A stretch of 62,998 bases of DNA, filler included, from Olpidium bornovanus S191 (Eukaryota; Fungi; Olpidiomycota): NCBI GenBank assembly GCA_017911155.1. It is 30 parts of 30 records of this genome, joined end to end, with 100 filler letters (N's around TTAATTAATTAA, not from the genome) between each part and the next. Parts side by side here need not be neighbours in the genome. Positions count along the whole stretch, not along the records: positions 24,693 to 28,518 come from JAEFCI010007819.1; 29 more parts are not named here. The stretch is one strand, 5' to 3'. The translations under genes and the position numbers were made by a program. Positions 24,305 to 28,758 of this stretch are shown here, piece by piece. Position 1 is the first letter of the stretch, and every line of letters begins with the position of its first letter. The notes beneath the pieces are model-generated. The model ran no database searches. It had not been told where the DNA came from and saw nothing but the letters and a program-made list of their open reading frames with translations.

Positions 24305-26023
24305 GGCGGGGTTATGTCGGCCGCGAAAAAAGCTATTCCCTTTTTTTTCTTTTCTTTTCTTTTTGGTTTTAGCCGGGTCGCGTCGACTTCTGGTTGTGGA
24401 CCGGTTTTTGCCAGGCGGGGGAGAGGCGAGACGGGGAATATACGGGGGCCCTACGACCCTCGCGAGACCTTCGACGTCTGCTGCCACGCCAAACGCTGCG
24501 GTTTGCGCGACCGGGCGATGTAACAAGCGTTTGTTCGTACTACGCTCGCGCGTGATCTAGAGGACGAGCGAGGACCCGGACAGTCTGTGCAGNNNNNNNN
24601 NNNNNNNNNNNNNNNNNNNNNNNNNNNNNNNNNNNNTTAATTAATTAANNNNNNNNNNNNNNNNNNNNNNNNNNNNNNNNNNNNNNNNNNNNGAAAGAGA
24701 CAACCCCGGGACCCGTCAAATAACCATTCGGCATCACGTCGTCAGGAAACGCAGCTGCTGACGGCGAGCTGGAACCACGCCGTGCCCCGACAGCGAAGGA
24801 CACGGCCAACATGTTCGCAAAGGCACCACCGTCACCCCACTTCGCGGCGTGCAAAGATGAAGTCGGCATGACAAGAACGACGGAATGAATTACACTCATT
24901 CGCACACAATGTTCTGTTTTTCCACTCTTTCTGTTTGTTTATCTCTCTTCCTTTCACCTATTTTTCTTTATGCCATAATTTCTATAAGTTCTACAAATTG
25001 AATTAGTTTTGGCACTGTAATTAGTAGAAATGCATCCCGTTATTTTTTTTTCTCTCTCGTCTCGTGATCGCATATTGTACACCACTCCTGGTTAATCCAA
25101 TTTCCCTTGTTTGATTGAGAGGGGGAGCGAGAGTTGCAGAATCACCGAACAAATTTGGGGGCATCCCCTTTCCCCGTGTTCGCCCTTCTTTCCCTTTTCC
25201 TTCCCCCCGGCGAAGGAAACCAAAATAAAGACGAACAGCGAGCTCCCGTCAGAAGTCGTTCTTCCACAAATTCTTGCCCGTCTAACGCCTGCCTGTGATC
25301 CTCTGGCTTGTGAAGGCCCCCGCCAACCGCTGCAAAGCCGGTTCCCTCTCCTTTCGCACAAAACTCGACGGCTAACGCTGTAAGTATTCGGCCACCCGTT
25401 CGGCGGGAATATTGCCATTCGTGGTGGAAAGAGAGGGGGAGGAGGAGAAGAACCAGATGAGGAAGTTAGTGTGGTTGTGGAAGTCCTGGAGGTACGTGAG
25501 GTAGCTGTGGCACCCCAACCATTTTCCCACCATTTTCCCTACCCAAGCTTTCTTTGATTTTTTTTTTTTGGTGCTCAGGGAACACTGTATTATCGTACTC
25601 CCAAGCCATCTCCGCACGCGGGCACCCAGTCCAAATACTTACGCGCATACAACGGGGCCATACGGTTCCACAGTACACTGGGAACGGCCAACAATGATAG
25701 AAACAGTTAGTAACATTTGCTTGGCATGGACGAGTTCTGCGCGCGTCTCAAGCAGGAGGACTCGGAATACAGTCTGCTCGGTCTGTACGTTTTGAAAGAA
25801 CAGTCTGACGCCGCGGTGCGTCCTCAATAAGCAAAGAGCATCATGGGTTGACGGTTCTTCTGCACTAGGCTGATGTCTGAAGGAAATGTCGGTTACAAGG
25901 GCCCAACCCCCCCCCCCCCCCTGAGCCACCACAAAACACCCCGCGGCACACGCCACACGCACACAGACGCAGGCACTTACACACACGCATGCCCAGGCGA
26001 AACGGCGGCCGAAGCACGCGGCA

Positions 26024-28457
26024 ATGACGACGACCACGACCGGCAAAGAACCGGCCGCTGCCGCTGCCGCGCTCCGGCAGCTAACCCGCCCAAGGCACTC
26101 TGCCGCCCACGCGGACGTCCAGGCTAAACCACGCCACACCCGGTCGTTCGCGAGCCCCTCGGAGATCGTGGACGCGCTCAAGTCCGACAACGCGGAGGCC
26201 CTGTACCAGGCGCTGGCGCAGCTGCGGAGGCAGCTGCGGAACGCGGGCGACGACGCGGCGGGCGCCGCGACCGTGGACGACGGCCGCCGTGTCGTCATCA
26301 AGTATCTGGAGCAGTCGAAAAACTGCGACGAGCTGTTCGGCGTCTGGCTGTTCCAGCGTAAAGTGCGTTGGTTTTTTGTTTCGTACCCCTCCCTTTCCAG
26401 ACCCGCGACCGACCGCGCTGAACAAGCGACTTGCGTGTATGCCCGCGACAGGGAAACGTCAACCGCCTGGAGGTCATCATTCTGGACGTGTTCACTCGCG
26501 TGCTTCGTGAGGCAAACAACGTCCTCACGAAAAGCACGGGCCTGGCCGTTGCGAAAAAGATATCCTTTTCCTGCTGGCTGTTTGCGCGGTTTTGCGCTGA
26601 ACTTGTGGGCGGGGCGCACTTTTTTATTTTTTTGAAAAGGGCTGGCAGCTACGGGAGAACGCGCGGACGGGACTGTTTCAATTACCCGTGACCATTGCCC
26701 TGCGGTGCACACATCATTAGAAGTTTTCTCTCAACCATCTATCGCAACCTTTCTTCCGGGAATGTTGCACTATGTCAAGCAACCCTCCGTCTCTTGACTG
26801 CTGTCGTTGCGCACGGCGGCAGCGTCGTGCGTGAACTGAAGGAAAATTTCAACTTTGGAATAAAAGTGGGTTTCTTGCGCGTGGGCAACGTTTCCCTTCC
26901 CCCCTCCAACCCCCCACCCCCACCCCCTCCCCGCCTATTCTCGGCTTTTTACTTTTGTTCACCTGCACGACTTGACGTCTTTTTTTTTGTTCCGGCAGGC
27001 TATGCATAAGCTGGCTAGCATTCGGCGAAAGCCTAATCAAGCTGACGCAGGAAGTCAGGGCGTAAAAGCTCATGGCGTCGGTTCGTTTACCTTGCGTGTT
27101 CATTGCTGGTACAATCGGGTTCGTGGCAACGTACGGGTTCACAGCGGTTTGACGCCAATGCAGACACCCGAACGTTGTATGTACAGTTTGTCCTGTCGTT
27201 TTTCAGATATGGCGACGCTGCCGTCAAGAAAGACATTTTAGAAGTGAAGGATTTAGTTAGCAGCATTTTTAAAGGGCTTCACCAGGACGATTATGAAGTA
27301 TGCCTGACGGCTTTTTAATATTACGTGGAAAAAGACTTGAACTCGCTAATGACATTTTGTTAGCTAGTGGACGAGGTTCTCTCCGTCTTCAAGAACCATC
27401 TGCTTCTTGATGTCGGAATAAGTCGCTTTGTCAAGGAATCGTTCTTCGGCGCGTATGTCCTAGAGAATGTACGTGGGGGTCAGGTAGAGCCACATGACAA
27501 CCAAAAAGTACCTTGTTGAAACTTAGTTTTTTCCAGGTTGCACGGCTGTATCCTCGACGAGAAACGGTGGAGTCAAAAACGTTCACGTCGATTGCAGCTT
27601 TGGCCCACGACTTTCTGGTTTTCGTTTGCTGCACGCCGGACGTGGGGGTATGGGTCCAGGATTCCGGCTGGTACACAGCGCAGCCGGCGTTGGGGTTGTC
27701 GGAAAACAAAACTCCACATGTCGGCCGGAACAACCACGTGCACAATCGCACTTTGGCAAAGTTCCTGCAGTGTCTGAGACCTACGGACGACGTCCTACAG
27801 CAGGAGCTGGTGCTAGCCATCCTGCAAGCCTGTCCAGAGCTATACCAGGTTTACTGGCAATCTTCGTCGCTATCCTTCGAACCGCGACTTTCGGCGAAGT
27901 GGCTCGCGAACATGGGTTTCTTCCAGCGTGCGGCGGCTTTGCCTGTTCCGTCGTTTGCGCTGCCGGGCCCCGACGGGTCCGCGCCCGTGTACCCGCTGCT
28001 GCCTCCGCCCGTGAGCGTCGCCGCAGACAACGTATTCCCGCCTGTTGTCCAGAGGAGAGTGCTCGGCAAAGGTCTTCAACACACCAGCTCGCTGGTGCGC
28101 CACGTAACCGCAGGCGCAGTCGCGACTGCCTTGAGGAGGCTCAGCTTGGTGTTGAGGCAGCTGAGAACTGTGGCGGACTCGTTTGCGGACGGGGAAGACG
28201 GCGACAGCTTGAAGAGCGCGGCGGAGGGACAGGCAAAGTGGAAGAAAGCGGCTGCGCTCGTTGCCGACGAGGTGCGCCGGCGCGCGCCCGACGCTCAGAT
28301 CCTGCTTGCGATGCAGCACTCCGTGATCGAGGAGGAGAAGAAGAACGGAGCCGGTCAAGGAGTCGACGGCAAGGATGACTACTCGAACAGCTCCGTTGGC
28401 ATGCTTCACGAGGACGTGCTACGGCTGATCAAGCATTACCTGGAAGTGCTGCCGGAG
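26024..28457 (+). CDS. URB1: Nucleolar pre-ribosomal-associated protein 1 (Npa1/URB1), 5' part, multi-exon
   Basis: Npa1-domain-like segments TIYRNLSS...LRLLTAVV, DTRTLYVQFVLSFF, IFKGLHQD, LAHDFLVFVCCTPDVGV, NRTLAKFLQCLRPTDDVLQQELVLAILQACPEL and FEPRLSAKWLANM. Confidence 0.9.
26560..26712 (+). other. U12-type AT-AC intron (153 nt) in URB1
   Basis: 5' end ATATCCTTTT, 3' end GCACAC, branch-like CCGTGAC at 26686-26692. Removing it joins ...GLAVAKK to IIRSFLSTIYRNL... in frame. Confidence 0.85.
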
Positions 28458-28758
28458 GTATGTGACGGAGCCGAGAGCGACGTATGCGGAAGAGTATGGC
28501 TTGGGGGTTAGATTTTGANNNNNNNNNNNNNNNNNNNNNNNNNNNNNNNNNNNNNNNNNNNNTTAATTAATTAANNNNNNNNNNNNNNNNNNNNNNNNNN
28601 NNNNNNNNNNNNNNNNNNGGTGCGTGGGGAGGAGGGTCAACGGGCGCAGTGCACGGGTCTTCCTGGCCAGCGGCTAAAGCGGTGAGCCGGGCTCGGAGAG
28701 ACGCCGCAGCACTCTCAATCGAAGCGGTCATTCGATGCGTATGCAAGATATAATTTTC

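Follow-up and report, generated by a model that had tools for sequence, protein, structure and literature searches.

The locus examined here raises the question of whether a 153-nt segment that interrupts a fungal URB1 coding sequence is an intron of the U12 type, as the original prediction held, or whether it is an AT-AC intron handled by the major spliceosome, a misread GT-AG intron, or no intron at all. It lies in a 3826-nt piece (24693-28518) of the window, by which we mean the whole stretch of DNA analysed (62,998 nucleotides, joined parts and filler included) and along which our positions count unless a locus label is given. Here we report that 26560-26712 is very probably a U12-type AT-AC intron in phase 0, situated in the URB1 Npa1 domain of an early-diverging, non-Dikarya fungus. 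The mRNA lacks these 153 nt, whose borders read ATATCC...CACAC, and two Mucorales as well as Calcarisporiella have an intron of the same class between the corresponding codons.

Minor splicing has a patchy record among the fungi, and the U12 consensus elements (/RTATCCTTT and UCCUUAACU) have been described together with the presence of U12 introns and the corresponding snRNAs in Rhizopus and Phycomyces (PMC2846911). Minor introns have been counted in Rhizophagus (n=205) and Basidiobolus (n=249) and are also reported from Spizellomyces and the Neocallimastigomycetes, with no convincing minor-intron support in Ascomycota or Basidiomycota (PMC10639083). Dikarya are described as lacking minor introns and several early-diverging lineages as retaining them, with records for Mucorales, Glomeromycota, Zoopagomycota and chytrids (PMC2846911, PMC10639083); the loss and patchy retention stated in the original prediction agree with this literature. 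Fungal U12-type AT-AC introns have been catalogued by Bartschat & Samuelsson 2010 (PMC2846911) and Larue & Roy 2023 (PMC10639083). No relevant report of a minor intron in URB1 came up when the literature was searched.

We assign the gene to URB1/Npa1, as originally proposed, on the basis of its predicted protein. URB1/Npa1p is a 60S ribosome-biogenesis factor (PF11707 Npa1, PF26140 HEAT_URB1, PF16201 NopRA1), and the window gene has the N-terminal Npa1 domain, colinear with full-length fungal URB1. PF11707 (Npa1, 'Ribosome 60S biogenesis N-terminal') matches three exons with E=4e-34, 9e-9 and 3e-13, the three scores being 118.8, 50.2 and 35.4 bits against a gathering cut-off of 22.7. A phmmer search with exon 7 against 1.84 billion representative proteins returned 652 relatives, the best of which are full-length URB1 proteins of ~1700-2400 aa named at source 'ribosome 60S biogenesis N-terminal-domain-containing protein' or 'nucleolar pre-ribosomal-associated protein 1'. 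Among these is a 2134-aa Jimgerdemannia URB1, matched over residues 292-602 with E=6.5e-61; identity to exon 7 is at most 43% among the matches listed. A separate homologue search with the 307-aa exon 7 (E<=1e-10, within a length window) found none, a PDB sequence search with the same exon gave no match, and an Rfam scan of the 3826-nt piece at E<=1 recovered no RNA family and no snRNA. The piece covers the first 614 URB1 codons and ends at 28518, inside the intron that follows exon 7 (Table 1); the C-terminal HEAT_URB1 and NopRA1 domains would be encoded beyond it.

Table 1. Features of the URB1 locus, in window positions
Feature	Positions	Strand	Description and support
URB1/Npa1 gene, 5' part (ATG to end of exon 7)	26024..28457	+	Pfam, phmmer, RNA contig; gene extends beyond the piece
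Exon 1	26024-26362	+	gene model
Intron 1, GT-AG, 89 nt	26363..26451	+	joints in X1 and X4; position common to 8/11 orthologues
Exon 2, 36 codons	26452..26559	+	GNVNRLEV...GLAVAKK; translation, X1 contig piece, colinear orthologue alignment
AT-AC intron, assigned to the U12 type, 153 nt	26560..26712	+	phase 0; RNA joint, in-frame TGA, no extra orthologue residues
U12-type 5' splice site	26560..26568	+	ATATCCTTT; consensus /RTATCCTTT (PMC2846911)
Candidate branch site	26686..26692	+	CCGTGAC; A at 26691, 21 nt from the intron's last base
3' terminal AC of the intron	26711..26712	+	sequence and RNA joint
Exon 3, 51 codons	26713..26865	+	IIRSFLSTIYRNLSSG...FNFGIK; Pfam Npa1 E=9.4e-9, X1 contig piece
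Intron 3, GT-AG, 133 nt	26866..26998	+	joint in X1; position common to 8/11 orthologues
Exon 4	26999-27080	+	gene model
Intron 4, GT-AG, 83 nt	27081..27163	+	X1 joint (27079->27163, cut +1); position common to 9/11 orthologues
Exon 5	27164-27297	+	gene model
Intron 5, GT-AG, 66 nt	27298..27363	+	joint in X1; position common to 7/11 orthologues
Exon 6	27364-27468	+	gene model
Intron 6, GT-AG, 68 nt	27469..27536	+	joint in X1; position common to 7/11 orthologues
Exon 7, 307 codons	27537-28457	+	gene model, X1 and X4 contigs

The sequence features on which the original prediction rested were all confirmed in the window, the stated coordinates by script. Exon 2 closes with ...GCG AAA AAG (AKK), its last base at 26559; the intron begins with ATATCCTTTT (26560-26569) and ends, 153 nt long, in GCACAC; and the reading frame continues in phase 0 from 26713 with ATC ATT AGA (IIRSFLSTIYRNL), so that the intron separates codons K149 and I150 in the N-terminal Npa1 domain. 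At the 5' end the claim of a perfect U12 splice site also stands, since ATATCCTTT agrees with /RTATCCTTT at 9/9 positions. The exact ATATCCTT 8-mer has a calculated expectation of ~0.06 per strand in the 3826-nt piece, and the looser motif [AG]TATCCT occurs just twice on the two strands of the piece: once at the start of the URB1 intron and once, as GTATCCTCGA at 27548, within an exon where the RNA has no joint. Reading through the intron keeps the frame (51 codons) and meets an in-frame TGA at 26689.

Pyrimidines make up 60% of the last 20 nt of the intron (26693-26712, CATTGCCCTGCGGTGCACAC) and occur there in runs of at most 4, so that a strong polypyrimidine tract is lacking. Searched from -5 to -40, the candidate branch site CCGTGAC shows one mismatch to CCTTRAC and 6/8 agreement with TCCTTRAC; relative to TCCTTAAC, a G replaces the first of the two adjacent Ts. 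The A of the motif (26691) is 21 nt from the intron's last base, a spacing among the longest of those usually seen. Phase 0 counts against the U12 reading, being the less common phase of minor introns in most lineages (PMC10639083). The window intron resembles the catalogued fungal U12 AT-AC introns in its terminal AT and AC, in matching the 5' consensus perfectly over 9 nt, in being removed precisely from the mRNA, in lacking a marked polypyrimidine tract before the 3' end and in having a non-Dikarya host.

Removal from the mRNA was observed directly. A 2449-nt contig assembled from RNA run X1 (word depth 11.5) contains the joint 26559->26713, recorded as 'skips 153, AT..AC', which is the junction named in the original prediction as the one to look for. 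The same contig removes five neighbouring GT-AG introns and falls into seven pieces that fit the gene model exactly; because five ordinary introns are gone from it too, it represents spliced mRNA. Support for the AT-AC junction consists of this one assembled contig from one run. Contigs from a second study (X4) confirm intron 1 and exon 7, the AT-AC junction being outside their reach. An RNA contig spans 25958-28458 with every intron removed, and the X1 contig continues beyond 28458 into sequence outside the piece, in a way that fits a GTATGT donor there. Since the dinucleotide AT stands at each of the two borders, the cut may slide by 0 to +2, giving TA..CA or AT..AT, and at no setting GT-AG.

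RNA runs X1-X7 contain 0.14-0.67 of the sequence words sampled from the whole gene, less than the ~76% that exons make up by coordinates. A search with 11 words sampled from the AT-AC intron alone listed soil-metagenome runs and no others, one of them containing a share of 0.18, which weakly supports efficient intron removal. The soil hit in itself suggests that the organism or a near relative lives in soil.

With the RNA in hand, one may ask whether the segment is an intron at all, or instead an assembly or allele-specific 153-nt insertion, with the RNA contig derived from a copy that never had it. In favour of this, 153 is a multiple of 3, and the RNA does differ from the window at a few bases (T>C at 26099 in the X1 contig, G>A at 28214 in an X4 contig), pointing to a different individual or strain. 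The same single-base differences mean that the RNA came from non-identical individuals or strains, and hence that the splice evidence is independent of the assembly. An insertion would have to have borders of exactly AT...AC and a full U12 5' consensus, carry an in-frame stop, share its codon boundary with a same-class intron of three other genera, and be missing from a contig that lacks five ordinary introns as well. We regard this explanation as extremely improbable.

Conservation of the site was assessed in intron maps of 11 annotated orthologue loci, whose exon-intron structure was obtained by exact protein-to-DNA threading. Aligned with ten fungal orthologues, the spliced window protein is gapless at AKK|IIR, which excludes a 51-residue coding insert. 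Spinellus fusiger (L008:818-896) has a 79-nt AT-AC intron, ATATCCTTTT...TATCCTTAAC-(10 nt)-AC, in the same alignment column and in phase 0, and Calcarisporiella thermophila (L007:852-948) has a 97-nt AT-AC intron, ATATCCTTTT...TCTCCTTAAC...AC, likewise in the same column and phase; a perfect CCTTAAC lies 11 and 16 nt from the end of these introns, respectively. The same arrangement is present in the DNA of Cunninghamella echinulata (L012:1847-1985), where 139 nt contain ATATCCTTT and a perfect TCCTTAAC. For Spinellus and Calcarisporiella, the public gene models already contain the same URB1 intron implicitly.

The window intron and those of Spinellus, Calcarisporiella and Cunninghamella are alike in codon boundary (K/T/S before I-I/L), phase 0, class and ATATCCTTTT start. 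They differ in length (153 nt against 79, 97 and 139 nt) and in branch site, the three having a perfect TCCTTAAC and the window intron CCGTGAC; their host proteins are ~36-40% identical to that of the window. The prediction had proposed examining URB1 orthologues for an intron at this position, and such a same-class intron was thus found in three fungi. In the intron maps it is absent from nine others, namely Jimgerdemannia, Geosiphon, Ambispora, Podila, Basidiobolus, Entomophthora, Piptocephalis, Spizellomyces and Borealophlyctis. None of the nine has any intron at the site, which indicates precise loss, not conversion to GT-AG.

Two further observations concern Cunninghamella. An unusually long distance of ~43 nt separates the TCCTTAAC of its intron from the inferred 3' end, and its deposited protein model (P0014) begins past the unannotated ATATCCTTT...AC intron, at the first Met close behind it. 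Since upstream exons are present in the DNA (L012:1513-1843, by tblastn), the N-terminus of P0014 looks truncated at the U12 intron. It had been claimed that predictors restricted to GT-AG would mis-model genes of this kind, and P0014 is a possible illustration; gene prediction for the present assembly must allow AT-AC/U12 introns.

Beyond the AT-AC site, five GT-AG intron positions of the window gene are in common with chytrid and Mucoromycota orthologues, and the introns that most orthologues carry at alignment columns 84 and 496 are missing from it. The URB1 of Basidiobolus meristosporus (L001) has a single intron in 2117 codons and none in the first 620, as against 13-17 introns in the chytrid and Mucoromycota orthologues. 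This amounts to an extensive loss of introns, and the species is one for which numerous minor introns are reported. For intron 4 of the window gene, a placement at 27062-27144 (also 83 nt, 19 nt apart, frame kept, ...SQG|RFDANAD...) is plausible from sequence alone; it was rejected, the RNA using 27081-27163.

How specific are the U12 elements? We compared them with a control set of 115 GT/GC-AG introns mapped in the URB1 orthologue genes and the window gene. A start matching [AG]TATCC was found in 0/115 of these, and a perfect CCTTRAC between -8 and -40 likewise in 0/115; a one-mismatch match to CCTTRAC in the same region was found in 12/115 (10%). The 5' splice site and the branch sites of the orthologous introns are therefore diagnostic of the U12 class. 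The window's own branch motif is weakly informative, because 12 of the 115 control introns match equally well: the prediction described CCGTGAC correctly, as one mismatch from the motif and 21 nt from the end, and the motif is a weak argument when taken alone.

An ordinary GT-AG intron across the same region was also considered. The original prediction stated that no good GT-AG pair restores the frame, and the statement needs dividing: the available donors are indeed all poor, although frame-restoring pairs do exist, 37 frame-preserving GT/GC-AG combinations being enumerated across the 153-nt region (e.g., GTTTGC at 26580 with an AG ending at 26720). These 37 alternatives were rejected, as their donors are poor, residues are added or deleted relative to the orthologues, and the RNA joint disagrees with them.

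Another explanation would be that the AT-AC intron is removed by the major spliceosome, either as a member of the rare U2-type AT-AC subclass or as a relic that outlived the minor machinery. The degenerate branch motif and its distance of 21 nt from the 3' end would suit such an origin. To our knowledge, U2-type AT-AC introns lack the ATATCCTT element, whereas the window intron keeps all nine consensus positions. That these nine positions are kept here and in three other fungi argues for continued selection by U11/U6atac pairing, and the nine intron-less fungi show precise loss rather than conversion. We consider removal by the major spliceosome very unlikely.

The evidence as a whole favours the U12 class, to which the 5' consensus, the RNA joint and the canonical AT-AC/ATATCCTTT/TCCTTAAC introns at the same site in three fungi all point, as the original prediction had it. 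Following the established model of U12 splicing, ATATCCTTT would be recognised by U11 and then by U6atac, and a branch adenosine near 26691 would be selected by U12 through pairing with the region near 26686-26692. Because the 153 nt are cleanly excised, the organism presumably keeps a functional minor spliceosome. The intron itself is probably old, predating the split of the host lineage from the Mucoromycotina, and would have been lost precisely in many other fungal lines without conversion to GT-AG.

The intron is thus correctly identified, and it is ordinary for an early-diverging fungus; the known distribution and mechanism of minor splicing are unchanged by it. Its interest is that of a clean, RNA-supported case of minor splicing in a non-Dikarya fungus, and of a positional marker: a URB1 minor intron that Mucorales and Calcarisporiella also possess and that at least nine other fungal lines have lost precisely.

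Which fungus the intron belongs to is a separate matter. The relatives looked up were fungi in 30/30 cases (Jimgerdemannia, Basidiobolus, Geosiphon, Spinellus, Calcarisporiella, several chytrids and some Dikarya). A quick URB1 tree places the window protein in a clade of Mucoromycota and Basidiobolus (SH-aLRT 97), and a mixture-model tree puts it at the base without a resolved placement. One-gene AU tests did not reject a grouping with Mucoromycota (p=0.30) or one with chytrids (p=0.47). Given that the mixture-model tree yields no firm placement and the tests reject neither grouping, we call the host an early-diverging fungus and place it no more finely.

The piece could also derive from an associated fungus (a contaminant, symbiont or pathogen), and the statement about a minor spliceosome would then apply to that associate. 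Two large raw-read RNA runs (X17 and X11), labelled as the species of X1, gave no read on the gene in ~10 million reads each, the intron words occurred in a soil metagenome alone among the runs listed, the piece is a short contig, and no protein exceeded 43% identity among 1.8 billion representatives in the matches listed. Against this, the transcript is present in two independent studies with that label (P1, P2), and a strain divergence above 5% could also explain the zero reads. We think an origin from an associate unlikely on balance, if well worth bearing in mind; it concerns attribution alone and leaves the nature of the intron unaffected. The species label of X17 and X11, for its part, may be that of a host or may cover divergent strains.

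A more far-reaching view of the host would make it a deep fungal lineage not surveyed for minor splicing, with relaxed U12 branch-site recognition and a minor intron in URB1 that predates the Mucoromycota. The identity of at most 43% to 1.8 billion representatives and a one-gene tree that does not place the protein are the grounds for a deep lineage, and the degenerate, distant branch site in a retained URB1 intron is the ground for possibly relaxed U12 branch recognition. We hold this combination to be rather improbable.

Two minor observations concern the sequence upstream of the gene. In the RNA contigs the transcript starts at 25958-25964, ~60 nt before the ATG at 26024, and a run of 15 C (25907-25921), succeeded by a CA/CG-rich tract (25940-25990), lies just upstream of this start. 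Further left, an open frame in + orientation (24693-24887) extends from the edge of the piece as far as a TGA at ~24885, after which comes a T-rich stretch; the frame may represent the 3' end of a gene lying upstream.
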